Shown piece by piece: positions 3,721 through 64,000 of a DNA stretch of 64,000 nucleotides (the stretch's first letter is position 1; every line of letters begins with the position of its first letter). Under the pieces are notes generated by a model. That model was not told the origin of the DNA. It did no database searches and saw nothing but the letters and a program-made list of their open reading frames with translations. Source of the stretch: Thalia democratica (lineage: Eukaryota); contig OZ241827.1 in assembly GCA_965202585.1 (NCBI GenBank), positions 66,464,001 through 66,528,000 on the forward strand. The letters run 5' to 3'. A program made the position numbers and the translations under genes.

Positions 3721-4562
3721 CAAATTCATTGTAAATATAATCATTATCACAGATACGAACTAAGTTTAAATTAGTATAAGTAACTGATTTATTAAACCTT
3801 TAGTAAATAGTAAGTAAGTCATATTATATATTTAAGTCAACTATAATTTAAGCGTTATCTTGGGGGCATCTACTTTACAAGTTAGAGCGCACGTTGCGTT
3901 ATAAACCAGGCCAATAATAGTGAATAAGTAGAAACCCTTGATAGCGACAAAGTTATGATGAGCTAATCATATAAGTGAAAACTTCTTATTGGCACAATTA
4001 AGAAATATTTTAAACTGTAGTATTAGAACTGGGTGTAAATAATTTACTTTAGCTTGTTGTACCATTATATTTGTTTTCGAAATAAACACATAGCCTTTTT
4101 GTTGCCTCTTTTCTTAGATTGTTATTGGAAAATTACTTCAAGTTGTTTTTTTTTTAGCTGAAATTTTTTTTTTAAAGTTGTCACAAAATAGGTATATTTT
4201 AATTCTTTTTGAAGCTGTTTAAAATTTTGCAGAAATTTGAAAGACCATTAGTTTTTAAAATGAGTGTGAATTTTTCTGACGCTAAGCCCTTAAACTTATT
4301 CCTGAAAGAAGTTTTTTTTTCGTATATGTTTAACAAAGTTTAAGTTTAAATAATATCTAGAATAAGTAGATAGTGTTTTAGTATTTTGATTGTAACATTG
4401 CATTGATAACTTCTTTGTTTTTCTGCCCAACAAATGTGTTGAAACTTTGAAATTCATAAGTTGTCCAGTTCCTTTAAAACTTTTGTGAAAGGTTTTAGCT
4501 ACGTAAACTAACAAAAGTTTGCATTTTTAAATAAATAAATAATTTTGTATACTCTGTTGCAG

Positions 4563-7500
4563 ATTTAGAGGAAAAGCTGAAAACTTCCAACGAGTTCGCA
4601 AACTTGCTCAAGAACGATTTAAACGAAGCGCTGAAGGAAAATGAAAAGCTGAGGAAATTCGCGCAAAATTACGAGAAGCTCGAACAAATGTGCCAGACCA
4701 AATCGCACAGGTTATTGAAATCTTCTTGAATTGCTACGCTTTTGTTTTTGGTTAAAAAAAATTAGAATAGAAATATTTGAAGACTTAAGACTGTTTTTAA
4801 AACTTTTGAATTACTACGCTTTTATTTTTGAAGACTTAAGATTATTTTGAGCATTTGATAAATTAGATTGGTGCGATAGTTGTTTGTTGAAACTTTATGA
4901 TTTTATCTCATAGTGCTAAATTAAGTTTAGAGAAAATTTTGGTTAAAGACCAATTATCATAGATTAAGTTTGCTTTTTTATCAGTATGTCTTTATTTTGC
5001 TTATTTCTAACAAAAAATATAAATATATAAAGTATTATAACTATATGACAAAGTTTTATAAATTTTCTGTGTGGAACAACAGCTGTAAGTTCTAAAAACA
5101 GAAAAGTAATTTTTAATAAAATAAATTGTATTGATATTAATAAATAATAAACCTGATAAGTATTTATTAAAAGATGCAAATATGTACTTGATAATATGTT
5201 TGTGCCCAAAAAATTAAAAAGTTTTTTCATTTAAATTAAAAAACAGTAAAGTACTTTTGAATCAGCCTTTAATAATATCAAACTCAAGTAGTCACTTTAA
5301 ATTTTAAAATAAAATCTTAATAATTATACAGAATATAAGTTCTTGAGAGAAATTTACAATTATTGAAAAGTTAATTTAATATTAATTATACACAATAGAA
5401 GTTCTTCAGAGATTTGCAATTTTTTTTAAACAAATAAAATGTTTATTATGTAGAATAGAAGTTCTTGAGAGGAATTTAAAATAATTAAGAAATTAAATTG
5501 ATATTAATTATTTAGAATAGAAGTTCTTGAGAGAAATTTGCAATCCAGCGCTCAGCAACACGAAGAATTGAAAGAATTGAAAAATCTTCTGCAAAAACAA
5601 AACAACAAGAAAACTGAAGATATACAAATGTTAGTAACGTTTTATTGTTATTGTTTTACTTAAATTAAACTAACGTTTGAGTAATTTTGCATCCTTAGTT
5701 GTATACCAAATTCTAAAAGTAACATTTTAAACAGTTACTAGATTTTTTCAGATTTAAAGTTTATGTCTTGTTGATGTATATTTTGAGTTGATATTAAAAC
5801 TTTAAGGCGAACTAAATTTATAATTAGCTAATATTAATTATTTTATTACAGTCAATATTATTATTAGTAAATACACAAATAGTTTTTCATGTTTGTATAT
5901 AGTATATGATAACTCAAGTACTTGTAAAACCATAACTGTGTAGCAAATTATAACAAAACACTTTTTAAACTTTGAAAAAAAAACCTAATGTTGAGAAGAG
6001 AAGCTCACCACTGAACAAAGTGTTTGTTACTCAGTCAGAATAGTTCTCCTGTATTGCCGAATATCAAACAGGCCAAAAACTATATTTCTACTTTCTCACT
6101 TTCCTGATTAGAAAAATGCAATCATGCTTCTTAAACCTCCACTGAAAAACTAAAATTGTATTTTTGTGTTTACAGGAGGCAAAGAGTTTAAGGTTTTTAG
6201 ACATGTGGTTTCAGGTCCATCTAAGAGGCGTTTGCAAGCGGCTCTCCAATATTTTACTGCACAATACTTTGTTAGTAGAGATCTCTCCTGTTGTGTTGAA
6301 AGCGTATTATTTTGAATTTTCCCATTAGTTGTGCGTCTTGATGTTCTTTTGAGAGCCAAAGAACTATCTTTACTTAGGAACAACAGTCGCCAAAGTTAGA
6401 TGACAATTTCTCACCCCGTTTGAGAGCAATTCATTATGCATGAGACATTGATTATTGATCCCATTAGGAAATTCTGCTCAACAATAACATTTATTCAGTT
6501 TAAAGGCTGAGGAAGTTAAATACATTTGAACTATATATTGTAGTAACCCGAGTCATTAAATATATTCATACTTTAAAATATTTTTAATTTATTTATATAT
6601 TGAGATATAAATTAATTAAGTAAGATAAATTCTAATCATTAAATTAGCTTTGTAAAAATAATTTAAAGAAAGCAATTAAGCTAAATATAATCTCCCTACA
6701 TACTTTAAAAGTTTTCAGAATCAAAAAACAATATTCTAATAGTATCACCATGTCTTTAACTTTTGCAACAAAATATTAAAAATCTTTATTAAAAGTTACA
6801 ATACAAATAAAAATGATAGTCAAATGTTTTTGAGGCAAACAAATTATAACTCTAAATGGAATTCTTTAAACTCAAAATGTGCTAAAACCTTAAAAACACT
6901 AGTCACGAATTAGAAAATACAAAAGAACATGAAACTAAAATCTGCTTTCCAAAAAGGCAATTTAAATAATAAAATTCTTTAAATAAATACCAAATGAACC
7001 CAACGTTGAAATAATCAATAGTGTTTGAACTGGCTTGTTTCAGTAATATACCTATTTTTTAAGAAAATTTTCCAAGAATAAAACCCGCTTGCTATATGCG
7101 TAAAAACACATCTAACAAACACCTCAACATTTCAAGTAATTGAAATCTCTAAACAGACTAAAGAACAAACTTAAGGGGATGGAATAGCTATAGATACATT
7201 TTAAAACAAGGTTACCCGAATTGGGTCAAGTGGCCCCCTTGGGGGCCATGAGGTCATAATTAAAAACTCACACTAGATATTCTGGAGTTGATGATGGAAA
7301 AGCAAAAAAAAAATCTTAAGTGTTTTTAATAGTAGTTTTTTGAGTAATCCTGTTGGAAGGGACCATAGCTTTTTTAATTTCTTTAAATGGGGCCATTTGA
7401 AAAAAAGTTTGGGGAACTCTTTTTTAAAAGTTCAAGCATCTCATAGAATACATTCAAAAGTTTATTTTTTTAACAAATTAAACAAAACTAACAGTCTGAA

Positions 7501-10500
7501 GAACAAACTTGAGGAGATGGAGTCGAAGCAGATGCAATTGGACAAAATCAACCAGCAGCAGGAGAACAAGCTGGAGGAAGCGAGGAAATGTTTGGAGGAG
7601 AGGGAGGGGAGGATAAGGGAGATGGAGGAAGCGAACATAGACATGGAGCAGAAGGTGCAGGACCTCAATAAGGAGTGCAAGGAGAAGGGTGACAAGATCA
7701 AGCAGCTGGCTTCGCAGGTTTGATGTTTTGTTTGTTTTAGTTGTAGGTTATAGTTTAGTGTTTGTTATTAAAGTAAATGTCAACCGGCTTTTTTGTGGTT
7801 TATGAATTTTTTATATTGTTAAGCAAGCAAGCTGGAATAAGATAAATATTTTTGCAAAGTTGTGTACTTTTTTTATCAGTTTACATCTGTAAAACAAATG
7901 CTCTAAAGTATAGTTAAGTATAATTTTAGAAAAAAATTTAAAAGCTTAATATTTTTTGAACTATATAAAACTATAGTTTTATTTAAGAATTTTTTAATGA
8001 TTAATAATCTTTACGATTAATAGGTTAAGTTTTTTATTACTTATTGTTTTTTGAAACAGTTTTTGCAAGTTTGTGTTTACTCTTTTATCAGTCTGCAATT
8101 GTAAAACAAATGGTTCAATTTTATAAAAATCTTTAAATGCTCAATTTTTCATAAGTTATAGACATAGTTTTATTTTAACTTTTATTAATGATCACATTAA
8201 TCTTTATGATTTATAGCTGTAGTTTTATTACTAGTTTTTTTTTTGAAACAGTTATCATCATGCGATGCAGACAGACAACAATCCGAACACAAATTGAAAT
8301 TATTAACTGTGGATCACAGAAAGTTGAATAACAAGTTCGATTCTCAAAAGAATAAGGTATTTTTCATTTATTATATATGAAGTTAATGAGGTATTTACTA
8401 CAAATTGAAGTTATGAACTGTCAACTTTTACAAAATTAATAAAAGCAAATTTATCAATGCATGTTTTAAAAATTTTTTAAGACAATTTTCATCAGTATTA
8501 TTAGTATTGAAGTATTTTAAGTAAAAATATTTCAAATATTTATTCATTATAACTATTTAACTTAAATATACATGTGTTGTGTACTTTTTTATACATTAAT
8601 TACTAACATTTAATAAAGAACTTGTTATTTTAAAGGTTAAACAGTACAGTATAATTTTATTAAAACGGAATCAAAATTAAATAGTATTTGAATTATTTTT
8701 TCAATGCAAATTTAAGTTAACTTTTACTTGAAACAAAATCTTCCCAAAACTTTAGCATCAAAATAGTTCATATTTAACAGAATTTTACTTTTTTGGTTTA
8801 CTTTTTCATAAAACGTAAAAACCGTAAATTAAGGCCATGGGGGGAGGGGTTGGCCATGTTTTTACAAGTTGATCTTATTTTAAAGATTTTATTGTAAGCT
8901 TCAAAATGCTTTTTATCGTTTTAGAAAATTCAAATTATTTTGTGAGATATGACCAGTCAAAGTCGAGCTGCATAATAGCTTTCCTGTGGGAAGGGAAAAC
9001 TAAAACAGCGAAAAAAGACTATTTTATTTAAAATCTATCTCCTCCTACATTTTTTAAGTAATCTTTTTCAAATTTTCAGTCTAATTTTTATACAATTACA
9101 AAAAATGTTACTTAGGAATTTTAAAAATTTTAAGTAATTTTTTTATTTTGCTAAATTTTTAAAATTCATAAGTAACGTTTTTTCTCATAATGTAAGGAAC
9201 ATTTCCTGAAAATTTGAAGAAGATTGCTTGAAAAATGAAGAAGGAGATAAATTTTTAAAATTTCCGAGAAAATTGACCCCTAAAAACTTGCAGTCCATAC
9301 GTTTGTATCGGAAACTTTTTACAAAAAACAAAATATCTCAAAAGTTAAATGATATTTTTGAATTCTATAAAAACTGGCTTGTAGTTTGTATTTAAAGCTT
9401 TCATGTAAAAACCAAAGTTAGTTTGTGTAAAAAAAAGTGTTTTACCCCCCATGGCCTTAAGCCTTACATAAGAATACTTGGATAATTTATTTAATGTTTC
9501 TTATAGATCAAAAGATTAGAAGACGATATGAGAGACTCAACAAAAAGAAATAAAGAAACGGTTGATGAACTAGAAAAAATAAATAAACAACTCAAAACAG
9601 AAGTAAGTTTATGTATGTATTGTGTATGCATATAATATGTTTTCCTTAAAATTTAACTAACTTTTACCTAAAACTATATTTAAAGCAATTTTTATTACTG
9701 CAATTACCACTGCTAATAATTTTGATCATTAATTTTCATTTTAAGACATAAACGAGAAATACCGTTTGAAATCATATAAATTAATCTATGAACCATATTT
9801 TAAAAATTATTACTAAACAACGTACTTTTACTAAGCATGAAAGCATTAAAGGTTGTGAAAACCTTAAAGAAATAAATATACAGCTGAGTTAAAACAAAAA
9901 AAAATTACCACACACTCAGACTAGTTTACTATAAAACAACTGAAGATAGTTTTTTTTTTTTTAATTAGTTTTGTTCGTTAAAACTTATGTTTATATGTTA
10001 AAACTTAATACTAAGATGGTAAGTTTTAATTTGTTCAGTTTTTAGCTTTGAATACTCTTTTTAAAAGTATACTACTGACTCAGATAAGTTTTTGGTAACT
10101 CAGGCTAGCTTCAATGCTTCAAACAGCATCAACCCTGCAAAATAAGCAATAAGTTCAATTGGATAATAATCAAGTTTTTAAATAGTTTGGTTTTGCATTG
10201 TAAAACTTTATATGGTTTGTCTAAGTACTTATATGAAAGTTATTTGTTATATTATTACCTTTTTCAATAACTTGTATCCTGTTACAACTTTAAAATAAAG
10301 TTTTTTTTAAGTTTTTGTAGTTACAAATGACTGTAAATTGTTTACTCAAAGTAAAACCTACCCATTATTAGCATAATTAATATCAACAGCTTAAAACAAA
10401 AGAAAAATTTATTTTATACAAAATTTTTTCAAATGTGTTAGAAACCTTTGTTATAAATAAGCAACATCTTTTAAAGTTCAATAAAAAGCTGTTGAGAAAA

Positions 10501-11758
10501 TAATAGTAAACAAATAATTTTTTTTTTTATCAGATTCAAAAAAAAACAAGAATGGGTACTACAATTTTTTTGAAGTGTACCAATAACATTTTAGTAATGT
10601 AATTTGAAATAAGATTTAAATTGCAAAAAAAAAATATTTAAGATTAATAGTTGTTAGTTTTTATATATACAAAAGACAAACAAACACTTTTTCAATTTTT
10701 TTTTTGTAAACAACGTAGTCTTGACAAAATTTAATTCAATCTTAATAATACGTATGTATATTAAGATAGGAACAATAAAAAGAGCTAACATTATTTGTTT
10801 ATCAAATATTGTCTATTTTTATGGTTTTAGTTTTTTTTTTTTTTTACTTCGAATACAAAAAATAAGCAATAGTAGTTTTCATTAATAATTTCAAAATACT
10901 AGAATATAGAAAATTACAACTGTAATTACTTACTGAAATACTCATGGTTGCCAAAAAATCTGGAATCCTGGAAAAACGTGGAATTTAACTATTTAGACTA
11001 AAAAACCTAGAATTTTGAACAAAATCACAAAAAAACTTGGAATTTTAAAGAAAAACTACTAAAAAACCTGGAGTTTTAAACTATTTTGAAATGTTTATTA
11101 GTGTACTTTCGATTTGATACAAAAAATCTATTTTATGGAGGAAAAATTTGTCACCATCAAAATTGTTTTTATTGTTTCTTACCTTAAACTCAGCTTTAAA
11201 TAAAAATAGACCAAAAAAACGTGTACTTTTAAAAAAGTGGAAAAAATTCAGAAAACCTGGAAGAATTTCTCCAAAAAAGTTGGCAATCCTGGATACTACA
11301 CCAAATTAATATTACAAATAGCAAAAAAAAACTGCAAAATTGGATACCATTTTTATAATAATTAAACAATCAACTAAATTCTTTCTACTTTTATAGTTCA
11401 ATTTTGAATTTTATTTAACATTTCAGATACGTATATATAAAAAAAGTATCAATTGTTATTTATCATAGGTATTTTCAAAAAAAGTTATGTTGTTGTTGTT
11501 GTTTATTAGCAATCTATCTATCAAAAAAATATTACAAACAATTGCTGAGGAAGTATACCAAATTAGTGTGACTAGTATTGAAACCCTTTAAAAACAAATG
11601 CTAACAATTAACCTAAATTCCAGATACAAACAAAGGAGAAGCAGATTGAAGCGAACGAGGACAAGTTGAAGCAACAGGATGTCCAGTTGACCAAATTCAA
11701 GAAGAAGCAGACCCGCATGATGCAGATGTGGTCGGAAATGCAGGACAGTCAGGAATGA
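4563..11758 (+). CDS. Unidentified coiled-coil protein, 5'-incomplete; join(4563-4710,5516-5629,7495-7717,8252-8356,9507-9602,11624-11758)
   Basis: Six GT-AG exons with consistent phases (1-2, 2-2, 2-0, 0-0, 0-0, 0-stop) splice into one E/K/Q/L-rich heptad-like frame, (D)LEEKLKTSNEF...RIEVLERNLQ...ILKNKLEEMESKQ...KFKKKQTRMMQMWSEMQDSQE*. The start exon was not found and the family was not recognised. Confidence 0.85.
5320..5545 (+). repeat. Four tandem ~62-bp copies of the intron/exon junction of coiled-coil exon 5516
   Basis: Unit TAATTAT..AGAATAGAAGTTCTTGAGAGAAATTT near 5321, 5382, 5445 and 5505. Confidence 0.85.
7207..7421. mobile_element. hAT (Charlie-like) MITE, family 3
   Basis: TIRs CAAGGTTACCCGAA / TTTGGGGAACTCTT with an exact 8-bp TSD TTTTAAAA on both sides. 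Related copies lie at 34900-35057, 41290-41590 and 61530-61732. Confidence 0.8.
8833..9456. mobile_element. Kolobok-like MITE (TTAA TSD), family 2
   Basis: TTAA|GGCCATGGGGGG ... CCCCCCATGGCC|TTAA. Internal sequence is shared with 24917, 27704 and 55035. A TTAA TSD with purine-purine termini fits Kolobok rather than piggyBac (CCC termini). Confidence 0.85.
10943..11291. mobile_element. MITE family 1
   Basis: CATGGTTGCCA ... TTGGCAATCCTG; flanks AATACT/GATACT. Confidence 0.8.
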
Positions 11759-12320
11759 TCTGTGTGATTGGTTGAAAGTGTGCAATGTGCTGATCTGATT
11801 GGATTAAAATTGCAATGAGCTGATCTGATTGGTTGAAAGTTTGCAATGAGCTGATCTGATTGGATTAGAATTGCACAAAGCTGATCTGATTAGAATTAGC
11901 AATAAACTGATCTGATTGGACCAAAATTGCATTAAGCTGATCTGATTGGATTAGAATTTCTAATAAACTGAACTGATTGGTATAAAATTGCACCAAGCTG
12001 ATCTGATTGGATTAAAATTGTGTTAATCTGATCTGATTGGATTAGAATTTGCAATAAGTTGATCTCATTGGATCAAAATTGCACTAACAAGCTGATCTGA
12101 TTGGTTTAAGATTTGTAACAAGCTGATATGATTGGTTTAGAGTTGCACTAAGCTGATCTGATTGGTTTAAAATTGCACCAAGCTAATCTGATTGGATTAG
12201 AATTTTCAATAAACTGATCTGATTGGTATAAAATTGTAATAATCTGATCTGATTGGTTTAAAATTTGTAATGCGCTGACCTAATTGGTTTATATTTTAAA
12301 GGTGATCTACTTGGATTAAA
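11756..12320. repeat. ~30-bp minisatellite, about 19 units, core GCTGATCTGATTGG
   Basis: Units are directly readable from 11756 to about 12315, e.g. GCTGATCTGATTGGATTAGAATTTGCAATAA. They degrade towards the 3' end. Confidence 0.95.
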
Positions 12321-13140
12321 ACAGTAAAATTTTGCTTACTTTTTGTCTGAATTGTAAAAGTAGGAAGTTTCAATAAATTATTGTTTTTTTTTCAATTGTT
12401 AGTAGTGCAAAAATTTAATTTACAACACTTGATTTTAGTTAATTTTGTTTTATAAGCTCGCTTTTTGTGAACTGAAAAGATTTTATTAATGAGATTAACT
12501 CTAACATCTCAAAGTGCTTACAATATGTAGAACTTCTTTTTGTTTTTGCATAAAAGATTTAAAAATTTTGACTTTGAACTGTTATGGTACATGTATTAGA
12601 TGTTTGAAATTTATAAAGTTATAAAGTATTTAAGAGTGAAAACTACAATGTATTGTTTTAAAATTGTTGAACTTTTTCTTAACATGTATTGTTTTTAAGT
12701 TGTACTGTTTGAGAGTATATCTTTAAATGCCTTTGAAGTATTTTGAGTCATTTAACAGTCATAGCAATTATATATCTATTCTTTTTGTTATTTATTAAGA
12801 TTTGTAAAAAAATGTAAAAGCTATTTTAATTAGCTTTTTATAAATTGTTGTCACAATTTTAATTTCTTAAAATAAGTTTGTTTTTAAGTTATGTAAAGTA
12901 TTATAATAATTTTTATTTCTGTATACTAAATACAATTTATGAAATTCCTTGTTAAAATAATCATTTGAATACTTTATTATACATTAAAAATTTTTTTTTT
13001 TCTTTTAAACTTCTAATCTAAGTCAAGTACTTAGTAAATGAAACTGTTTCTAATCTTAATAAAAAGCAACAAAATACTTAGTTTTTTGTTCACCATTCAA
13101 GTGATTTGTAAAAAATAACTAAAACTTTCCTTGATTTTTT

Positions 13141-20284: not shown

Positions 20285-22762
20285 TCAGTCCAGCTGCAGC
20301 TTGATGGGCCTGTTCAGGAACAGCCGGTTGTTGAGGGTTTCCACGGCGGCCCTGGCGTCGCTCGGGTGGTTGAACCTGAGGAAGCCCTCGCCGGTGACGT
20401 GACCCGCCTTGTCGAACACCAGCCGGATGGACTCGCTAACCGGGCGGAACTTGCTGAAGAACTCAATGATGTCCTCCTGCGTGACCGACGCGGACAGCCC
20501 AAGCATCTTCACCTGCTTGGAGCTGCTTGGCGGCGGAGCAAAGAAGGTTCCCGGTCCGCTGGAGGGCGCCTTGTGCGCCAGAGAGTAGGGAGAAGGTGCG
20601 GCGGCCGACGGTGGTGGCGCCAGAGTGCCTTCCACGCGAGGGCGTTTCTCATAAGGCGAGTATGGAGAAGGGGCATGCTGGGGTGCAGCATAGTAAGAGT
20701 GTGGTGGTGCGTGCGGGGGTGGGGCGTATGGAGAAGCTCCGTATGCAGGCCTGGGTGGCGGAACCCCAACTGTCCTCTGCAAGTCTTCGAACTTGATTGG
20801 GAAGAACTGCAGCTGCTGGCCAAAGAACCTGATCTTCTCGTGCAAATCGACAGCACGGTGGCAGTCCATCCTGTTGTCCAGCTCAACAAAAGACTCTCCC
20901 CTGCACCTGCCGTGGGGATCCCTCATGATGTGGATGCGCCTGCTGTCAATGTGGTTGTCCCTCTTCAGTATGTTGTAGATGTCGGTCTCAGTGCAGTCGG
21001 AAGGCAGGTTCCTGATGTTGATGCAGTTCATGTTCAGCTTGTCAATGTCCTCGTGGAACATCATGGTGATTGGTTTCTGCGGCAGAGGAGCTTCCTCGTC
21101 AAAAACTTGGTCTGGAAAAGGTTCACCTGGCAGGACACGCTCCCAGATTGTCTTCAGGTACTGCACGTAGCTGGACTTGACCAGCACTGACCTGCCAAAG
21201 AAGTCTTTTTCATGCATTTTCTCAGCCTTCAAAGCATCTTCAGCGCATGTCAGACGAATGAAAACATGTCCAGTCTTTTTGGGTCCCTTTGCTAAATAAA
21301 CAATACCACCAAATGGGATCTTAATGTCTTTGAAAAAATTTTGTATGTCTTCATTAGAGGCATGGTAGGCAACGTTGGCCATCCTGACACAGAACTTTCT
21401 CTTATTGATTCTTTCCTCCTCACTTGCTTTCTCCTTACCATTAGTCTCCTCCTTCTTTTCCTCTGCCTTTGGAGACTTGCTGGACTCGTGGTCATTGTTG
21501 TCTTCAGTCTCAGCCTTCTCACCATTGGGAGATTTCTCACCTTCAGATCCTGAACTTTCCTTCTTTTTCTCCTCAACTTTTTTTATTGTGCCATTCAACT
21601 CATTCTCTCTTGGCTTGTGCACATACGAGGTAACCTTGCTTTTTACAGGCCTTGGCTTATGCTGGAAAGCGCCTGGGGCCTTGTGGGGTGGTACAACAGC
21701 TCTGATTCTTTCCAAGTTCTTTATGAAGTCAACCTCATTTGTGAAGTCCTTGTTCCTGTAGAAGGTGTCAATCATGAGGCGCATGGGAACAGGCCTGATG
21801 TCAAGAGGTGCGCTGATGAAAACTTGCCTGTCTTTTGCAAGCACTTTCTCAAACTCATACTTGTCAGTCTCGAAATCAATGAAGGCCCTGCCCTTGCATA
21901 CTTCACCGCGCATCTCAAGAAACAACCTCTGCTCTTTGAAGTGCTTGGAAAGACCAAGGAATCCGCCCAGGCTGTTGTAGTCAGCCGTTGGAGAAACTCC
22001 ATAGACTTCCAAGCAGTACGCAGCTGGAATGGGGGCAGCCACTTCAGGCACAACAGGAGGCAAAACCACTGGTGGAATTTCAACTGGTGCCCTGACAGCA
22101 GCAACTTTTTTGTCCTCCAACGACTTGCAGTATGTCTCCGGTGGCGTGCTTATCTTCACGCTGCAGTTGTTGATCATGGCAGGGTCCATCTTCAAGGCAG
22201 AGTTCTTCTCATGCATGGTGGCAAACTTAATGATGGCTGACTCAAACCTGTCGTTGGGGCCGTTGAAGATCTTGATGAAGTGGATTGTTCTGGGGTGAAA
22301 GAAGGCTGTGAGGTGGTGCTCAGCCACCAAGCCTGAAGGGAAAAGGCACTCAATGTACTTCAAATGCTCCTGCTCAACACCTCCGTACATGACAGAGGGG
22401 GGTGTTGAAACAACTGGCGGGTACGGTTCAGCCTCGTACCTGCTGCTGTGGTGGTGTGAAGGAGTGGTGATCACCACGGGCTCAACAGACGAAGCTGGCT
22501 GGTTGCCCTCGATGATCTTGTCCATTTCTGCCTGGCTGGAGAGGGTGAGTCTCACCGGGCTACTGCACAAGAGCTGCCCATCCAGCTGCATGGCCCTCCT
22601 GGCGTCCTCGTCAGAGTTGAAGAGGATGAAGGCCGTTCCGTCCTCGCCACCGATGATCTGCACCCCTCCCTCGGGTATTTCCAGGTCCTTAAAGAACTCG
22701 CGGATGTGGGGAGGGTGGGCGGCCATGGAGAGGTTGCGCAGTCTGATCACAAACATGGTCAT
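20285..22762 (-). CDS. RBM12: RNA-binding protein 12-like (multi-RRM), 825 aa, intronless CDS
   Basis: N-terminus FVIRLRNL...FFKDLEIPEGGVQIIGGEDGTAFILFNSDEDAR matches the RBM12/RBM12B N-terminal RRM (VIRLQGL...FFSGLTIPDGGVHIVGGELGEAFIVFATDEDAR). About six RRM-like repeats, a Pro/Tyr-rich linker and a C-terminal RRM are present. GC content is high. RBM12 versus RBM12B orthology cannot be resolved. Confidence 0.92.
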   Translation of the reverse strand: MTMFVIRLRNLSMAAHPPHIREFFKDLEIPEGGVQIIGGEDGTAFILFNSDEDARRAMQLDGQLLCSSPVRLTLSSQAEMDKIIEGNQPASSVEPVVITTPSHHHSSRYEAEPYPPVVSTPPSVMYGGVEQEHLKYIECLFPSGLVAEHHLTAFFHPRTIHFIKIFNGPNDRFESAIIKFATMHEKNSALKMDPAMINNCSVKISTPPETYCKSLEDKKVAAVRAPVEIPPVVLPPVVPEVAAPIPAAYCLEVYGVSPTADYNSLGGFLGLSKHFKEQRLFLEMRGEVCKGRAFIDFETDKYEFEKVLAKDRQVFISAPLDIRPVPMRLMIDTFYRNKDFTNEVDFIKNLERIRAVVPPHKAPGAFQHKPRPVKSKVTSYVHKPRENELNGTIKKVEEKKKESSGSEGEKSPNGEKAETEDNNDHESSKSPKAEEKKEETNGKEKASEEERINKRKFCVRMANVAYHASNEDIQNFFKDIKIPFGGIVYLAKGPKKTGHVFIRLTCAEDALKAEKMHEKDFFGRSVLVKSSYVQYLKTIWERVLPGEPFPDQVFDEEAPLPQKPITMMFHEDIDKLNMNCINIRNLPSDCTETDIYNILKRDNHIDSRRIHIMRDPHGRCRGESFVELDNRMDCHRAVDLHEKIRFFGQQLQFFPIKFEDLQRTVGVPPPRPAYGASPYAPPPHAPPHSYYAAPQHAPSPYSPYEKRPRVEGTLAPPPSAAAPSPYSLAHKAPSSGPGTFFAPPPSSSKQVKMLGLSASVTQEDIIEFFSKFRPVSESIRLVFDKAGHVTGEGFLRFNHPSDARAAVETLNNRLFLNRPIKLQLD

Positions 22763-42557: not shown

Positions 42558-45500
42558 TTAACTATTCATGCTCATTTTGTCAACGCTCCTAGTGATGGAA
42601 CTTATGGATTCCAAGTTATCATCTGGGTTGGCGGCGAGGTTTCTTTCTATCTGGGGCCCGTCTATAGGTATCACTCTAACTACCACATAGTCGCTATTTG
42701 GTGACCCAAATCTAAAATTATTTCACGTAAAAAGTATTTTACTTTACTAAATTTATCAGTAATGTTTTATGAACAGTATAAATTTCAATACTATAAAATA
42801 TGTATCAGTATATTTAAATTTAACTTTTTATCATAAAGAATGTTAAGTATTAAACAATAAATTTACATTGGTCAGCACAAGTTTAAGAGGTATAAAACAC
42901 ATGTCACTATTTGCTTTTATTTAAGACTTGTTTTGAACACATATTAATAACTATAGTTGGTAAAATAATAGTATTGTAATGTAAAGAAATATAAGGCTTT
43001 TTTATAACCAAAGTTAGATTATAAAAACTATCAGACTGCTTATGTATAAAATTTTTGTAATGGTCCACTTTGGGAAACCCTGAACTAGACTAAGAAAAAA
43101 AGTACTACTACATTTTCAAAATTATTTTACACATAAATATAAGTGTAAAAACTTACTTGAGTTTCAAGTAAAACTACCAAAGTTAGACTTGAAAAAAAAA
43201 CACTCCAAAAGTGCTTTAAGTATCCTGATTTTATTCGTAATCTGCCAGTTTAAAAAATAAACCTGAAAGTAGTTACATGGCTGCTGACTTGGTTGTTCTG
43301 GAACCCGTTGACGAACTTGTAAAAGTTGAAAACCTCCAAAGGAACCGGTCCACTATCGCTCGAGGACCTTAGTACTTTTTGGTAGTCCTGAGAGCCGTAC
43401 TTTGCAACAAATACCCGACACTGGCACAATCTGAACACTTTTAACGACCCATGCTCGTATTTTAGTATGATGCCGCCTTTTGAGGTGGAGATGATCTTCG
43501 TGACTTGGTCGTAGCTGCCTGTTTTTTATAAAAATCAAAACCGTTGTTAGATGAAATATCTTAATTTAATGTTGTAACAATTTGATTTGACTCTATTTTA
43601 AACCTGATTTTTTAATGCTATAAAAGTGACCTGAATATGACCGGACCAATACGTAGGTAAACTTATACAATAACAATTATTAGCCAATTTTATATATAAA
43701 AACCTACAAAGTTTACTTGTTTTGTAAGCGTATGTATCTTCACATCATAATAAAAATATTTCTTTATCGTTTGGGTTTTATGCGAATGTAAAACAATCTG
43801 ATTTGATCAAAGCACAGACTAACACTTCAAAAACTAAAGAGCTAAATGTTGTAAAAAGCGTTTAAGCAACATAGAGTCTTATAAACATGTGTTTAACCGA
43901 CCGACCGAATAATTAAGAAAGTTCAATAGAAATACTTATAAACATGAAAAACTATTAAATTGTATTTGTCGATAACAGTCTTCCTTTTATGCTGCCTCTG
44001 AACAAAAAAGAAGCAGCAATTTTCAAATCTTCTTAGAAAAAGGAAATTTTGATAAGGGAATTGGTTTAAGATGCACTATTTGAAATACATATTATCAATT
44101 TTAACTATTTTAATACAGCACCATTTTTCTTAATTACCTGCATACTTGAACGTCTTCGAATTCTTACCGACATCTTCAATAAGTTCCTTCATTACAGTAT
44201 CACCTTTTTTAATTACTTCATTGTAGTTTTTATTCAAATTTATTTGCAATCCTTTGTCTAGTTGAAATATGTGATTTTCCGCCATTGTGTCGTACATGAC
44301 ATTCACTTGAAAGCAAGATAAATCTTGTTCTACAATGTGAATTGGTAATTAAGGAAAGTTTACTTGACAATTTATATATAAAAACAAATCAGTGTGCTTT
44401 ACTGAGTAATTTATAGTGTGATAAAACCTTGTATAAAAAATGAAAGGTTTTTAATATTAGTTTTATACTTAGTTACAAAACGTTTAATTACTTTTGCAAT
44501 TTAATAAACTGAAAAGCCTATAGTTTTATATATACACGATAACTTTGGCTCGTACTAATAAGTATTAACTTACAAAATTAATTACAGCTTAACTAGCTGG
44601 GGAATAGAAATCATGAGCGATTTATTTGGTAAATAAAAAAAAACATCAACAACATCTTACTTTTTATGTTCAGCTCATTTAGAATTGTATCCAAAGACTT
44701 GATATTTTTAGGTGAAGTTCTTTGACCTGTTAAAATTAAAAGCATAGTATTAAAAAAATTATTTAAAAAACTAATGCCAGGGTTTTAAAAAGTTTTTGGA
44801 AAATATTTTTCAGGTTTTCAATTTTTTTTCAGGTTTTTAAAACTACACGTTTCTGGGTATATTTTTAGCTATAAATTAATTTTTAGGTAAAAAATTTGTG
44901 TTAAATAGTATAACGACATTGAAAAGACTTGTCTAAAGCTTCTTTGAATGTGTTTTATGATAAAAGAAGTTTTTCGATACAACAGATTTTTGTGTCATAT
45001 CGAAATTTCACTACTTAATATGTAAAAGTTGCTTTAAATTCAAGGTTTTTTAGTTATTTTTGTTCAAAATTCCAGTTCAAAATTTTCCGAGGATTCTAGG
45101 CTTTTTGGCAACCCTGAAATGTTTAAGAACTTTTTCAAACCAACTTGTGTTTGAACTGGCGTAGGTGTCGGAAGTGGGGGGAACTTGGTTGGGGGTTTGG
45201 GGTTGGCCAGGGCTGTTAGGTTGTTGGTGTATAGGTGATAAAGGGTTCAGCCTGAAGCTCATTGGGGATACGGGATTTGAGTTGGGGTCATTCATTGTCA
45301 TGGGTGTGGGCACCGGCGTCGTTTCTGTATTTAAATTGAAAACAAATGTTAGTGTGTGCAAAAAAAGAAAAAAAGTGTGCAGTTTAAAATTACCATATAC
45401 ATTATAAATGTTGTTTCTGTGTTGGAATCCGAAATTGTTTCTCAGTGTTTTCAAGTTAAAGTTATAGGCAAACTAATTTTTTGGTTTGCACACGAACAGC

Positions 45501-48500: not shown

Positions 48501-51500
48501 AAAATTTTAAACAATTTCTATCTTTAAAAAAAAGGCGAAATAATAATAACAACACAGAAAACTATTTTCATTACTTAATAAAATTGTTTATAAACATACC
48601 GTATTCGAAGTATCAATTTTAAATAAGAATAAAATAGTTTTATTTAGTTATCTCGTTTAAACTTAAACAAAAAATTATATATTATTTAAAATGTTTTTGA
48701 TGACTTTTAATACAAGCAAGTGTAAACTAGTTATTTTAATTATTTCAGAATTTTAATTATTTTAGAATTATTTTAGAACTAGAATTTTATTAAATATAAT
48801 TGAACCAAGTATTACAAGGGTTGCTACTCTTTCAGTCAAAAAAAAAACTGATTTACCAAAAACTGTCCTGAGTCATCCTGAATTTTTTTTAATTCTTAAT
48901 TTTTTTTCACTTCTAGCGCAAACTGCTTATACCTCATAGTTCTTTTACTGTAAATAATAAATCTAAAAGTTAAAAATATATGCTTTTACAATTGATGCTT
49001 AAATAAATTAATAAAAAGTGCTGTTTTTGAAGATTCAACATTTAAATTCTAAATCGATTGTAAGCTTTTTAATAAGTTTGTGGATAATTTTATGTAAACA
49101 TTGTAGTTAATTTTATATATAAACGAAAATATTTTGAACTTGATTTTTTGTTGTTTCTTAGAGTAGTGAAGAGCTAGCCTCTAAGCTAAAAAAATTAAAC
49201 AAGCATTTCAAAATAAACAAAATTTTCAAAATATAAAAACTAGATAAATTAAATCTCAGTCAAAATCTAAAAAAGTAGTGAGATTAAAAAAATCTTAAAA
49301 CTTTCCTGGGGTTTTATGAAACAACAGATCTATCTTGAGTTAGCCTGATTTGTATTGAGTCATCCTGAGAATAAAAACAAAAACATTATGAGTGTCCTGA
49401 ATGTGTGGCAACTCTGTATTACTTATTATACATGAGGTTTTATTTTTCAAAAGTGCATTAGGATATTATATAGTTAAAAGCACCAATTCATTACCAACAA
49501 TAAGTTAAATATTAACAAGGTAACATTTGTTCAAAAAACAAAAAACTCAACATAAAATTTGCATAAAATGGGTAGTATAGTACTGATCAATAAATAAAGT
49601 ACACACTTAAATAAAACAGATATAATAAATTATACTTTAACACAAACCATTTTGGTTGTTTGGGTTTACAGGAATCATTTGTGATTGGTTCTGGTAAGCT
49701 GGAGTGTTCTGAAAAATTATGAAGTATCATTTTAAAGCAAAAACTTTTTTTAAGTCTGGATTATTAGTATGCTACTTATGAATCTACAATATTTACAAAA
49801 ACCAAACTAACAAAAATGTGTTAACAACACAGTTTTATTTATATAAAAAACTAGTATCACATGAATTAGGCTCAACAACTTTTTAAATTTTGTATAAGAT
49901 GAATTATTAATATTTTACACTCAAAGTTTGAAATCAAAACTATTTGTATTATCTATATTATACTCTAAATTTCGTTTTAAATAAAAAAGTTTTTTTTATT
50001 TAACAAAAAAATCTACAAATTTATTAGTATTCGTTATATTGCCTAAAGTACTTTCAAATTCTTCTTCAGTTCTAATTGCCTACTGAAGAAGAATTTGAAA
50101 GTACTTTAGGCAATATAACGAATACTAATAAATTTGTAGATTTTTTTGTTAAATAAAAAAAACCTTTTTATTTAAAACGATTTTGATAAAGACAAAAAAA
50201 TCACGAAGAACAACACACAACCAGGGGAAGATTTGAGACACTTAAAACTAAAATATTTTTACACTCTAAATTTGAAATCAAAACTGTTTGCATTATGTTT
50301 AAACTTGACAAAACAGTTAAAAAATAACTTACTTGAGCTGAATAATGTGCAGGATTGACATTTTGTAATACATGAACATCTTGTGCAGGTTGTTGATGGT
50401 ATTCAAACTGGTGATTGGTTGCTATAAATACAAGCTAGTTTTAACAATTTAAAACAGTACATATAACTATAACAAATTTTAATTTTAATCAAAACCAGCA
50501 AAAAAGTTCTTCCATTATGATTTTAAACATCTTAAAAGTTTTTAAAGCAAGTTTTTAATGAAATTATCACAAAACTCAATATAAACTAAAATCATTTAAT
50601 CATAAGTTTTGGCTGGTGTATATTGTTAAAAACTAAAATAACAATCTTAAAATTTTACCTAAAAAATCTAATGCCAGAAATTTTAAAAACTGTTTGAACA
50701 TAATAAATTCTTTTCAAAGCAAGTATTTACTCAAATTATCACAAAACTCTTTACAAACTAACTGGAAGGATTGTTGTAAGCCACGTACTGTTGCTGGTTA
50801 TTGAAATTTTCACTGTATTCACCATGTGGTCTCTTCCTTGAAGGAGGTCCATAATTAACTGTTGATAACAATATAAAAACTATTTTTGCTGTGACTTTGT
50901 CATTTACTATAAAAAACTATAAAGCCACAATGGAAAGGTTTATAAAACAAAAAAAAAACATTGGCACTTATGTAACTTCAAGTATTAACTATGAGTCACT
51001 TTTTTTAAAACATTAAAAAAAAATCAAGTTTTGAGATATAGTCAGTTTTGTAAAAAGTTTTAAACAAAACTTTATAGACCATAAAATTTTCATCATCAGT
51101 TTTCTCTTAAATTTAAAAAGTTTTAACTTAAGATTTTTAGCTCTAAACTTATTTGTCCACTTTAACCAGCTTCAAAGTTTTGTAACTAATAATAAAATTT
51201 AGTTAATTTTTTTGGAAGTATAAAACTCAGTAAATTTTCACTAACCGTTATGATTATAATTTGCACTTTTATTTACTTTTCTGTTTTCTTGCACACAATA
51301 ACATTTGAAATTGCTACCAAAATTGTGATCAACTTTTCTGAAGTCATTTGACTTATCCATGGCATTTCTGAACTTGTTTTTTAACTCAGTGATATCTTTC
51401 GAGATGTTTTTATCTCTCCATTTGTCTTTGGGAGGAATAGGAAAATTTCTGTGTTCAGCATAAGCCTATAAAGTGCATTTTTAGCTGAATATAATTTTTT

Positions 51501-53568
51501 TAAAACTTTTGAAAAAACTTTTATTTGATAGATTTCTATTTAAAAAATATTAATTTAAAAGCTCTACATATATAATATAACATTATAATATAACATCTAT
51601 AATATAACATTAATTTCAAAGTTTTTTTGTGTTTAAAAACAAAACTAAATAAAAAATAAATATTATAGAACACTCTTAATTCTTTTTTTACAGTATTTCT
51701 ATGGAACCTTTTATCAACTTTAAAGTCTGGTAAGTTCAACACTTTTTTTTTACAAAGTTTAACATTGGCTCTTGTTATATAAAGCTTAGAGTAAATACTA
51801 TAAAATACTTATAATAGATAATAAATTCAATTATTTTTTGAGATATAATCAGTTTTGTAAAAATTACTAAATACAACCATATAGAAATAAAAAGTTTCCA
51901 AGGCCTATCTTGATATATAAAAAAATCACTAAACATATATCTCCTTCATTTTTAAAGCAATTTAATTCAAATTTTTAGAAAAGGTGCTGTTCAATATAAC
52001 AAAAAACATGTAAAAAGCATATTTTGAAAATAAAATACTATGACCAAAATTAAGAAAAAAAAAAGATTATTTCTTTTATCAAATTTTATTTTTACAAAAA
52101 CTTGAAAATTTGTTTTACAAGTTGTTTAAAGTTTATTCAATATAACTTTTATAAATCTTTAAAACATTTGCTCCAAAACTGAAGGAGGATATATATTTTT
52201 AGTGAAATATTACATTTTTGCTCTTTTAGTTTGTGCCTCCCATAAAGAACCTATTGAACACTCAAACTTTGACTACTTATATCTCAAAAGCCACTTTACT
52301 ACTTATATCTGTTTAAATAAGTGGTAAAAATAAACAAGCGGGTCAATTAATTCATGTAAAAAATAAGACTAAATTTAAAAAAGTGTTATATCCCCTATGC
52401 CCAAAACTAATTTCTTTAAAAGCATTAAAGTTGTCTCCAAATCTATTGAACAAAAGTTTAAAAAAAGTTAAATGCTAACATAAAGTATCAAAAGTATAAA
52501 CTTATACCTAAAAATATTAAAAAAGGTTTACCATAATTATAAATATACCAAGTATCCTTAGAAATATATTTAAATTATTGTAACTCAATGTTTTTAAGTT
52601 ATTTCACAATGTATCAACATTCACTTTATTCAGTCTGTAGTCTTCAACATATGCTTTTTTTTATCAAACAGCAACAAAGCACTAACGAAAATAACACTCC
52701 AATATTCCTTCCAATTAAGATCACCCATTCTGACCCAGGGAAACTTGAATGTGCATGCAGGAAAACCTGGTTCCTTGACTTGTTCTAATCCGGGGATATC
52801 CCCTTTTTTGAGATGGTGGATAATCCATGTCCGGAGTGGGGCATTTGCCATCATTAGTTCTTCTGTGACAGCTACAATTTGTAAAAATAAATAGTTTTGA
52901 AAGCTTTAAAAATACCAGTGGAAACAACAAGAAAACTAAGCGCTTTACCATCAATGTTTTAATTTACTTGCAAACCATTTGGTTTTAGTATTATTTAAAG
53001 TAGGGTTTCCCAAATTCATTTTAATAAATCCCACTTGAAAAATATTTAAAAATAAATGCCCTATTTCTCTACTAGTTAATTACCCATTAGAATTTATGGA
53101 TCTAGTTATTTCCCCTAAAAGGTTATATGAAAACTAAGGTTTAAAGGTTTCTCAGAAACTTCTTGTAGTTTCTTTTAGTTCTGAGAGTTCATATAAAACA
53201 ATTTCAAAGCTAGTTTTAAGAAAGTTTTTACTATTCTTGTAATTAGCTTTCAAAGCATATGTGTTAAATAATGACATTATTAACGTTCAAAAGAATTTTT
53301 AAAAATTAATCTTTTATAAGTTGTGCAGGTTAGTGTTTAATGATCATAAAGAAAAAATATCTATCAAATCTTATCATTTACTTTAAATGTTAAAACTATA
53401 CAAAATACTTATATTATTACAAAAAGTAATATAAATACATTATAAATAAAAAGTTTTTATTATTTTTAACATTGAGACAAATGTGTATGTTCCATACAGT
53501 AAGTGTATTTACACAAATTTTTTAAATTAAAGCATAAAACAACCTGTAGCTAAAAAAGAATTATCCAT
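42558..53568 (-). CDS. IRF: Interferon regulatory factor-like protein A (DBD + IAD), 529 aa, 13 coding exons: 53544-53568, 52687-52871, 51246-51465, 50763-50858, 50333-50421, 49648-49708, 47721-47749, 47101-47140, 46336-46398, 45145-45324, 44138-44329, 43263-43518, 42558-42711
   Basis: All junctions are GT-AG with matching phases and sum to 1590 nt (530 codons including TAA). DBD motifs: LRTWII...GDIPGL...FKFPW and FRNAMDKSNDF (compare IRF4 LRCALNKSNDF). IAD motifs: GGIILKY...FRLCQCRVF (compare IRF6 RLCQCKVY) and FRFG...VVVRVIP. The small linker exons are less certain than the domain exons. No vertebrate ortholog is assignable. Confidence 0.88.
44778..45116. mobile_element. MITE family 1 in IRF-A intron 10, ending about 28 bp from the donor
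   Basis: CAGGGTTTT ... TTGGCAACCCTG with the family's internal sequence. Confidence 0.75.
45470..46085. repeat. ~350-bp period direct duplication in IRF-A intron 9
   Basis: TTTGCACACGAA...ATGTGCATG...CTGAGTTTTAG...AACTATGTAAGATATGTTTG occurs near 45485 and 45820. Confidence 0.75.
48816..49416. mobile_element. MITE family 1, long subfamily, in IRF-A intron 6
   Basis: AAGGGTTGCTAC ... GTGGCAACTCTG with an exact 6-bp TSD TATTAC. Confidence 0.8.
49972..50180. repeat. Near-perfect inverted repeat, 99-bp arms and 11-nt spacer, in IRF-A intron 5
   Basis: Arms 49972-50070 and 50082-50180 with one mismatch seen; loop TCTAATTGCCT. Confidence 0.95.
51899..52402. mobile_element. Degenerate Kolobok-like MITE in IRF-A intron 2
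   Basis: CTCCTTCATTTT, TTTAGTTTGTGCCTCCCATAAAGAACCTATTG and CCCCTATGCCC motifs of family 2. Confidence 0.55.
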
Positions 53569-62620: not shown

Positions 62621-64000
62621 ATGGATTCTTCTGCAAGTTAAATTTTTTAAAAATAAATTGTTTAGTTTTAAATATTAAATGTATATTGTCTGGCAGTAGC
62701 ACATTTCATTTTGTTATTTAAATCTCAATTTTAGAGAACTTGTTTTTGTATTTGTTTTTTGTGTTTCTTTTGAAGTTTTAGTGGAAAATAATATTTTTCT
62801 AGTTTAAAGACAAGGAAAAGCTTAATCAAGTGTACTTCAAAATATTTTTAGACACAAAGAAAAACTTCTGTTTTTGCTTAACTTTGTCTACAATAAAAAG
62901 TACTTACTTATTAAAAACATTTACTTATCATCAAATGCTAATACTTACCCTTAAATCATCAGGTGCAAAAGAAGACCTAATGATGGAAAGTACAACTTTG
63001 AAAAACTGGATAGTCCACCATCTCAATAAAGGGGATATCCCCGGATTAGAACTGGTCAAAGAACCAGGTTATCCACCATGGACATTTAAATTTCCCTGGG
63101 TAAGAATGAATGACCCTGGTTGGAAGAAAAAGTGGAGTGTTATATTCGTTAGTTTTAGCTGTTAATTTTTAAATTATTTTTTCATACATAGTGGCCTTAA
63201 AAATACTTTGTAATGTTTTAAGATAAACCTTGTTTTTCATGATTTTAAATCTATTTTGTTTTTTTTTTAATAGACTTAAGTTTATTATTTATGGTTTAGA
63301 AAATATCATAATCATTAACTATAAAAAGTAAAGTATGTTAAGATAAACATAAACTTTGTCTGTATAAACAAGTTTCTGGTTGTTTATTTATTAAAAATCT
63401 GTGCGCAATTTTCTATAAAATTTATTTTTTATATATAAATTATTTGTTTTGTAATTACCTACACCAAGTATAACAAAAAAAAAGAGAATAACTTTAAAAG
63501 TATGCTTACAATTAAACTGCTACATCTCACTAAAGTTCCTTTGCAAAGTAAGCTATTTTATGTACCTAATTTGAAAGTGCTGGCTTAACACACAATAAGA
63601 TAAAAAACTTGAAGTAATTTAAATTCAAACAGTATTAAGATTTGAACTTGCTGTACAGTGCCTTCTAGCAGGTTTATTTACTACAATTTTACACTAGATT
63701 TAAAAAATATTTTTTATACACATTGTACCAAAAAAGATTATATCTAAATATACAAATGTGAATCTAAATTTGTAATTATTATATGTAACATAACAAAACA
63801 AATTTATTACTAAGGAGTATGCGAGACACAAAAAGTTTCCTATTCCAGCAATGGAAACTTGGACTTACGAAGAAAGTAAAAAGATTATTTCAAATCTACG
63901 AAATACTTTCAGAATGGCATTGCACAGTAATAAAGATTTTACAAGAATAAAAGACTATGATAAAAATTACAATTGTTATTGCATAAATTTTAACAGAAAA
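62621..64000 (+). CDS. IRF: Interferon regulatory factor-like protein B, 5' part; join(62621-62636,62963-63147,63815->64000)
   Basis: MDSSA|SAKEDLMMESTTLKNWIVHHLNKGDIPGL...FKFPWVRM...WSVIF|EYARHKKFPIP...LRNTFRMALHSNKDF. Exon 2 has the same length (185 nt) and phases (1-0) as in IRF-A. The gene runs off the window. Confidence 0.88.

Follow-up and report, generated by a model that had tools for sequence, protein, structure and literature searches.

The window analyzed here, a 64-kb stretch of animal DNA (24% GC) from the salp Thalia democratica, contains two multi-exon genes of the IRF (interferon regulatory factor) family, A and B, which are arranged head to head approximately 10 kb apart. Judged from their sequences, A and B are a variant of this family that departs from two of its textbook features, namely the tryptophan pentad of the DNA-binding domain (DBD) and the residues that contact DNA. 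Gene A lies on the minus strand and runs from 52854 down to 42558 in an 8-exon model that was built by following splice phases. Its open reading frame (ORF) is uninterrupted, spans 433 or 443 aa depending on the donor used for exon 6, and closes at a TAA codon. Gene B starts at 62980 on the plus strand and extends beyond the end of the window. The exons of the two genes are listed below, where IAD denotes the IRF association domain.

52687-52854, minus strand: gene A coding exon 1, 56 aa, N-terminal half of the IRF DBD, identified from the ORF and splice sites
51246-51465, minus strand: gene A coding exon 2, remaining (C-terminal) DBD half, with a Pfam IRF match
50763-50858, minus strand: gene A exon 3, linker, splice sites and frame consistent with the model
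45145-45324, minus strand: gene A exon 4, Pro/Ser/Asn/Gln-rich linker, with a weak donor (gttggt)
44661-44726, minus strand: gene A exon 5, linker, with an aacag acceptor, a gtaaga donor and fitting phases
44168-44329, minus strand: gene A exon 6, start of the IAD, with an alternative donor at 44138; either donor keeps the phase
43263-43518, minus strand: gene A exon 7, core of the IAD, with a PF10401 match
42558-42711, minus strand: gene A last exon, end of the IAD, Ser-rich tail ESISSITRS and stop; the phase-2 junction fits
62980-63147, plus strand: gene B coding exon 1, with a Pfam IRF match and 70% aa identity to gene A exon 1
63815-64000, plus strand: gene B coding exon 2, homologous to gene A exon 2 (39% aa identity), leaving the window

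An earlier note on this DNA had placed the gene at 51246-52871. This interval does hold the DBD exons, but gene A reaches 42558, and position 52871 proved to be an AG acceptor, which precedes the gene A ATG by 17 nt; in gene B, a similar acceptor precedes the ATG by ~17 nt. The first coding exon of gene A has the N-terminus MMANAPLRTW and ends with the residues WSVIF, followed by a GTTAGT donor in phase 0. Beyond an intron of 1.2 kb, exon 2 is entered through an atag acceptor, begins with the residues AYAEH, and ends in phase 1, again at a GTTAGT donor. This exon opens with AYAEHRNFPIPPKDKW and includes ITELKNKFRNAMDKSNDFRKV, and its recognizable elements are AYA, FPIPPKDKW, the recognition helix ITELKNKFRNAMDKS and a wing of the form DFRKV...FKCYCV. 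The corresponding recognition helix in exon 2 of gene B is ISNLRNTFRMALHSN. As the earlier note had described, the intron between the DBD exons is in phase 0, and it occupies the same position in genes A and B; a phase-0 intron divides the DBD of most IRFs (PMC2885996). The position is also conserved in five other family members, with a VS read-through at this point in five metagenome relatives.

Further downstream, the frame of gene A exon 4 holds only if this exon is spliced straight to exon 3. An 89-nt exon candidate at 50333-50421 on the minus strand is bounded by good splice sites (acceptor tatag, donor gtaagt), but it breaks the frame of gene A and was left out of the model. It encodes a Q/H-rich peptide and may be a poison exon, an alternative exon or a chance match. 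In terms of possible regulatory features, the exon 3 motif PPSRKRPHG is a possible nuclear localization signal, compatible with nuclear import, and the Ser-rich C-terminal tail of the predicted protein is compatible with phospho-regulation.

With respect to family membership, we compared the exons with the Pfam models PF00605 (IRF DBD) and PF10401 (IAD), both of which have a cut-off of 27 bits. The PF00605 match of exon 1 covers profile positions 2-48 and scores 17.4 bits for gene A and 21.3 bits for gene B, and that of gene A exon 2 covers positions 55-91 and scores 18.9 bits. The two gene A matches are colinear and, with the exons scored separately, sum to ~36 bits as compared with the cut-off of 27. 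The IAD exon at 43263-43518 matched PF10401 positions 63-134 at 33.4 bits, which is above the cut-off, and the exons flanking it complete a region of ~200 aa; gene A exon 6 by itself gave no Pfam match. The HMMER comparison that the earlier note had proposed thus returned matches to both profiles, PF00605 exon by exon and below its cut-off, and the identification of an IRF with an IAD stands. In addition, gene A exon 2 fell among IRF clusters in a protein-language-model search (0.84; 172 shared features), and exon 1 of a related metagenome fragment, P0006, alone reached 28.7 bits against PF00605.

In structure prediction, the AlphaFold2 half-model of gene A exon 1 (pLDDT 76) contains a helix at residues 7-17 together with strands, and that of exon 2 (pLDDT 62) contains a helix at residues 21-38 and then a hairpin formed by 42-45 and 55-58. 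In Foldseek comparisons with the Protein Data Bank (PDB), IRF DBD chains made up the top 38 matches for the exon 1 model and the top 12 for the exon 2 model, at non-significant E values of 0.2-1. At the level of PDB sequences, gene A exon 2 gave no IRF match either singly or as a profile, and the best match of gene B exon 1 was vIRF-1 of the herpesvirus associated with Kaposi's sarcoma (KSHV), with the IRF-2 DBD also aligned. Taken together, genes A and B are IRF-family members of the IAD1 type, and this membership is secure.

We then assigned residue equivalences, for exon 1 by aligning that of gene B with IRF-2 in phmmer, and for exon 2 from the ungapped Pfam register combined with the helix of the AlphaFold2 exon 2 fragment model. 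Within the tryptophan pentad (W11, W26, W38, W58 and W77 of IRF1), W11 and W38 (the latter in FPW) alone are kept. W26 is replaced by Gln in gene A and by Leu in gene B, and in both genes W58 has become Tyr and W77 has become Leu, exactly as the earlier count of two retained tryptophans out of five had it. W26 and W77 are core residues of the IRF fold. The W77 position corresponds to the Leu of TELKNKFR in gene A and of SNLRNTFR in gene B, the Arg of the FR pair being Arg82. We also considered whether W72, in PIPPKDKW (compare PDPxTW), might be a displaced W77; this was rejected in favor of L84, which is supported by the Pfam register and by an i/i+4 spacing to Phe like that of W77 and F81. 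The DBD has furthermore gained two insertions, one of 3 aa in exon 1 and one of ~6-7 residues between the Y58 position and the recognition helix, in keeping with the ~3 and ~7 aa proposed previously. In total, the DBD contains 5 Trp residues in gene A and 6 in gene B. Extra family-conserved Trp residues are located in WSVIF and FPIPxxxxW. The earlier description of shared Trp residues as non-canonical does not hold for the Trp of GDxNW/GW, which aligns with W46 of IRF-2, is canonical for the IRF1/2 type, and is invariant in 7 of 7 exon-1 family members.

In IRF1, the major groove is contacted by Arg82, Cys83, Asn86 and Ser87, and the DNA backbone is contacted by Trp11, Trp38 and Trp58 (PMC6543449). 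The groove positions 82/83/86/87 read R, N, D and K in gene A and R, M, H and S in gene B, such that gene A retains Arg82 only, and gene B retains Arg82 and Ser87. The loop 1 His40, which follows PW, is Arg in both genes, and Phe81, Arg82 and Ala84 are retained in helix 3 of both. The earlier note was therefore right that His40, Cys83 and the contact Asn are replaced and that Arg82 is kept, although this Asn is Asn86 and not Asn80. In terms of backbone contacts, both surviving Trp residues and the conservative W58Y change coincide exactly with the positions that dock IRF1 onto the DNA backbone, and the lost W26 and W77 are absent from the published IRF1 DNA-contact list. Basic pI values of 9.45-9.67 characterize the DBDs of both genes and of a third IRF type, described below.

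The distribution of these features was explored with an exhaustive HMMER profile scan of 1.84 billion protein representatives, among which no annotated protein, ascidian or other, matched the exon 1 profile at E <= 1e-3. The relatives are exon-sized ORF fragments from Tara Oceans and other marine-metagenome contigs only. None of the 7 exon-1 sequences carries Trp at position 26, and all of them keep W11, FPW and the W46-like Trp, which upholds the proposal of a lineage-restricted pattern. One further metagenome contig, L017, was rejected as a relative, as it is spurious and bacterial (60% GC). A third IRF type was found on Tara Oceans contig L007 (3158-4357, 24% GC) and also on L016. It keeps A-W-A, has lost the Arg82 equivalent in its recognition helix (KNLLNNAF), and has a loop that is 9 aa longer. 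The residues of helix 3 vary by paralog, reading RNAMDK in gene A, RMALHS in gene B and NNAFNK in the third type.

To gauge selection, gene A was compared with orthologs from a close relative in Tara Oceans data, exon 1 with contig L001 and exon 2 with contig L012. Exon 1 differs from its ortholog by 8.5 synonymous and 7.5 non-synonymous differences, corresponding to a ratio of non-synonymous to synonymous rates (omega) of 0.18. For exon 2, compared over its first 57 codons, the counts are 2 non-synonymous and 8 synonymous (omega ~0.04; binomial p = 2e-5 under neutrality), and the recognition helix is identical between the two species. The introns flanking these exons show more mismatches and many indels. 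Because the recognition-helix exon is constrained, the helix unchanged and the introns more diverged, gene A is not decaying, and its DNA-reading surface is held by purifying selection.

The two paralogs themselves have diverged unevenly. Between A and B, exon 1 shows 70% aa identity and a synonymous divergence (dS) of 0.66, as compared with 39% and ~2.4 for exon 2. At the nucleotide level, exon 1 of A and B forms a 147-nt inverted repeat of 84% identity (52681-52827 and 63007-63153), and the introns are unalignable. This contrast suggests either that gene conversion has acted on exon 1 alone or that synonymous sites are unusually constrained.

Among known IRFs, the vertebrate IRF4/IRF8-type factors (IAD1, IRF3-9 group) share with the salp genes an N-terminal DBD (of predicted winged-helix fold in the salp genes) that is interrupted by a phase-0 intron, then a linker rich in Pro and Ser, and an IAD at the C-terminus, and W11, W38, Phe81, Arg82 and Ala84 are common to both. 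IRF4 DBD chains show 32-33% identity to gene A exon 1 in the Foldseek comparison, and the KSNDF sequence that follows helix 3 may be a further resemblance to IRF4. In contrast, the salp genes are unlike the IRF4/IRF8 type in W26Q/L, W58Y, W77L, His40Arg, Cys83Asn/Met and Asn86Asp/His, as well as in the 3-aa and ~6-7-aa insertions, a longer predicted helix 3, and the new invariant Trp residues of WSVIF and FPIPxxxxW.

A second point of comparison is KSHV vIRF-1 (K9; PDB 4HLX/4HLY), in which three of the five conserved Trp residues and the loop 1 His are gone, as they are in the salp genes. The vIRF-1 DBD does not bind the IRF consensus, and the protein was long considered to be non-DNA-binding; its fold is nonetheless kept, helix 3 lies in the major groove, and it binds DNA other than the ISRE (interferon-stimulated response element; PMC3627575). 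Whereas vIRF-1 is viral, the salp genes are cellular, contain introns and have orthologs in related plankton, and the two Arg residues used by helix 3 of vIRF-1 differ from the salp recognition-helix residues. Viral IRFs are herpesvirus-encoded and intronless, and the locus described here is of a different kind, being cellular, set in a tunicate genome of 24% GC, and divided by 10 kb of introns into 8 exons. With respect to helix 3, human IRF4 C99A and C99R lose ISRE binding and C99R acquires non-canonical sites (PMC10630337), which agrees with the earlier statement that C99R alters sequence preference. IRF4 C99R and T95R are single changes in or beside the helix-3 Arg-Cys pair that redirect the factor off the ISRE, and in this they recall the salp helix 3; the titles of PDB entries 8JKL-8JKS describe IRF4 T95R on GATA, GACA and GAGA motifs. 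Whereas these IRF4 variants carry a point mutation, somatic or germline, in a canonical DBD, in the salp genes the entire contact surface has been rebuilt and is fixed by selection. Within tunicates, Ciona intestinalis has nine IRF-like genes that are divergent, cluster by species, include local duplicates and resemble vertebrate IRFs only slightly (PMC2885996), and the ascidian and salp genes are both tunicate-lineage expansions of divergent IRFs. Divergent tunicate immune domains that drift past standard hidden Markov models (HMMs) have been attributed to rapid tunicate evolution (PMC8662601).

On balance, we think it somewhat probable that A and B bind DNA with altered, paralog-specific specificity, a reading that is supported by the vIRF-1 and IRF4 C99R precedents. 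According to this model, A and B would be functional paralogous IAD1-type IRF transcription factors in a fast-evolving pelagic tunicate. Their DBD would retain the IRF winged-helix fold, and it keeps the backbone-docking residues (W11, W38 and an aromatic residue at 58) and the helix-3 Arg82. The core residues W26 and W77 have been swapped out and new conserved Trp residues placed elsewhere, and the loop 1 His and the base readers Cys83, Asn86 and Ser87 have been replaced, with gene B keeping Ser at 87. The proteins would still be imported into the nucleus and use helix 3 to bind DNA, the motif read would be one other than GAAA/ISRE and different for each paralog, and pairing or regulation would proceed via the C-terminal IAD. 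The gene structure, the family assignment, the substitutions, the purifying selection and the restricted distribution are what the sequences show; that the proteins bind DNA, have a changed specificity, and act in the nucleus and through the IAD we infer from them.

The replacement of three of the five canonical Trp residues, the loop 1 His, Cys83 and Asn86 could also be understood as degeneration of a DBD that no longer binds DNA, leaving an IAD that sequesters other IRFs or cofactors, as has mainly been proposed for viral IRFs. Consistent with such a decoy or adaptor role, the IAD is the best-conserved Pfam match, and the closest PDB sequence to gene B exon 1 is vIRF-1, long thought not to bind DNA. 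However, vIRF-1 proved to bind DNA after all (PMC3627575), and the recognition-helix exon of gene A, at an omega of 0.04, is the most constrained part that was measured. Because this exon is constrained, the DBD still basic, and the residues kept those of the DNA-contact set (PMC6543449), the sequences favor the reading of another motif over a decoy for A and B, and we regard the latter as unlikely. A different possibility is that these are ordinary fast-evolving tunicate IRF-like genes, in which Arg82 and the fold suffice for what is still GAAA-type or ISRE-like recognition (canonical GAAANNGAAA). This would accord with the retention of Arg82, Phe81 and Ala84, with the nine divergent IRF-like genes of Ciona (PMC2885996), and with the fast tunicate rate that explains divergent immune domains (PMC8662601). 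Set against this, mutation of the Cys beside the Arg in IRF4 (C99A, C99R) abolishes ISRE binding (PMC10630337), Asn86 is replaced in both A and B, Ser87 is replaced in A, and the contact positions are not the same in the two paralogs, all of which renders this account unlikely as well. Low scores to IRF models, together with an exon-like segment (50333-50421) that would break the frame if included, might instead hint at decaying duplicates, pseudogenes or a wrong gene model. Such an explanation is highly improbable given a complete ORF that stays in phase through all 8 exons, spans 10 kb and uses canonical splice sites, purifying selection on both DBD exons, and an intron position kept in five other family members.

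The reading of A and B as DNA-binding factors of altered specificity also has to contend with several points that weigh against it. When scored individually, single DBD exons fall below the PF00605 cut-off, because the IRF DBD is divided over two exons. Gene B exon 2 alone was recognized neither by Pfam nor by the protein-language-model search, and is called IRF because it is homologous to gene A exon 2 and has an identical intron position. The Foldseek E values are not significant, as expected because the models are half domains, and the selection tests are based on just 10 and 16 substitutions in gene A only. Finally, the third type shows an omega of ~0.8 between L007 and L016. With this value and no Arg82 equivalent in the third type, the IRF family here is therefore heterogeneous, and not every member need bind DNA.

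Regarding the remainder of the window, only A and B were matched by HMMs of both exons, and no third IRF gene was found within it. Weak exon-HMM matches at 4.5-5.7 kb were rejected as a further IRF copy and attributed to coiled-coil noise; exons of a coiled-coil protein with weak CCDC22-type matches lie at 4535-7720 on the plus strand and are the source of spurious exon-2 HMM matches. Inside the long intron of gene A is a near-perfect hairpin (49972-50070 and 50082-50180), its two arms of 99 nt each showing 99% complementarity around a loop of 11 nt, which could be an element resembling a miniature inverted-repeat transposable element or a hairpin RNA precursor. A search with Rfam gave no match anywhere in the window. 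A dispersed repeat family of 73-93% identity occurs in both orientations at 8.9-9.45, 24.9-25.5, 27.7-28.3, 52.15-52.3 and 55.0-55.7 kb, with one copy within gene A intron 1. Tandem repeats comprise an array with a 30/31-nt period at 11726-12333 and units of ~0.9-1 kb at 1.0-4.2 kb. The window also contains an intronless ORF of 825 aa at 20285-22762 on the minus strand, in a 48% GC island, which encodes several RRM domains and is RBM12/'swan'-like. Its named close relatives are only ascidian (Phallusia 'Swan', Clavelina and Styela), and its matches in marine metagenomes are 98% and 79%. The relatives of this ORF, combined with the Tara origin of all IRF relatives, point to a pelagic tunicate as the host. 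Hydra or another cnidarian, which the 24% GC had first suggested, was rejected as host because the named relatives of this ORF are ascidians only and every close match comes from Tara Oceans plankton contigs.

The IRF DBD is usually regarded as a near-invariant tryptophan-pentad reader of GAAA. A cellular IRF clade without three of the five Trp residues and most of the base contacts, yet strongly constrained, shows the extent to which this fold can be re-tooled, and comparable re-tooling has so far been illustrated by viral IRFs and disease mutants alone. The novelty first claimed for these genes was overstated, as vIRF-1 is a published precedent (PMC3627575) and the large number and strong divergence of tunicate IRF-like genes had been described before (PMC2885996). 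Impact is limited accordingly by the known divergence of tunicate IRF-like genes and by the predicted nature of the function assigned to A and B, and the same substitutions in ascidian IRF-like genes would be the main threat to novelty; our literature search surfaced no paper pairing salps with IRFs. As natural variants, the salp IRFs would offer material for studying the determinants of IRF specificity and a way into how innate immunity or development is regulated in salps. We consider it plausible, if short of probable, that A and B represent a private pelagic-tunicate IRF clade in which the hydrophobic core has been re-packed, with W26 and W77 lost and new invariant Trp residues gained, and the base-reading face of helix 3 has been rewritten differently from paralog to paralog before selection froze it, giving non-GAAA specificities. 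If true, this clade would amount to a set of naturally evolved IRF DBDs whose specificities are new, and it may be connected to an immune or developmental programme specific to tunicates.

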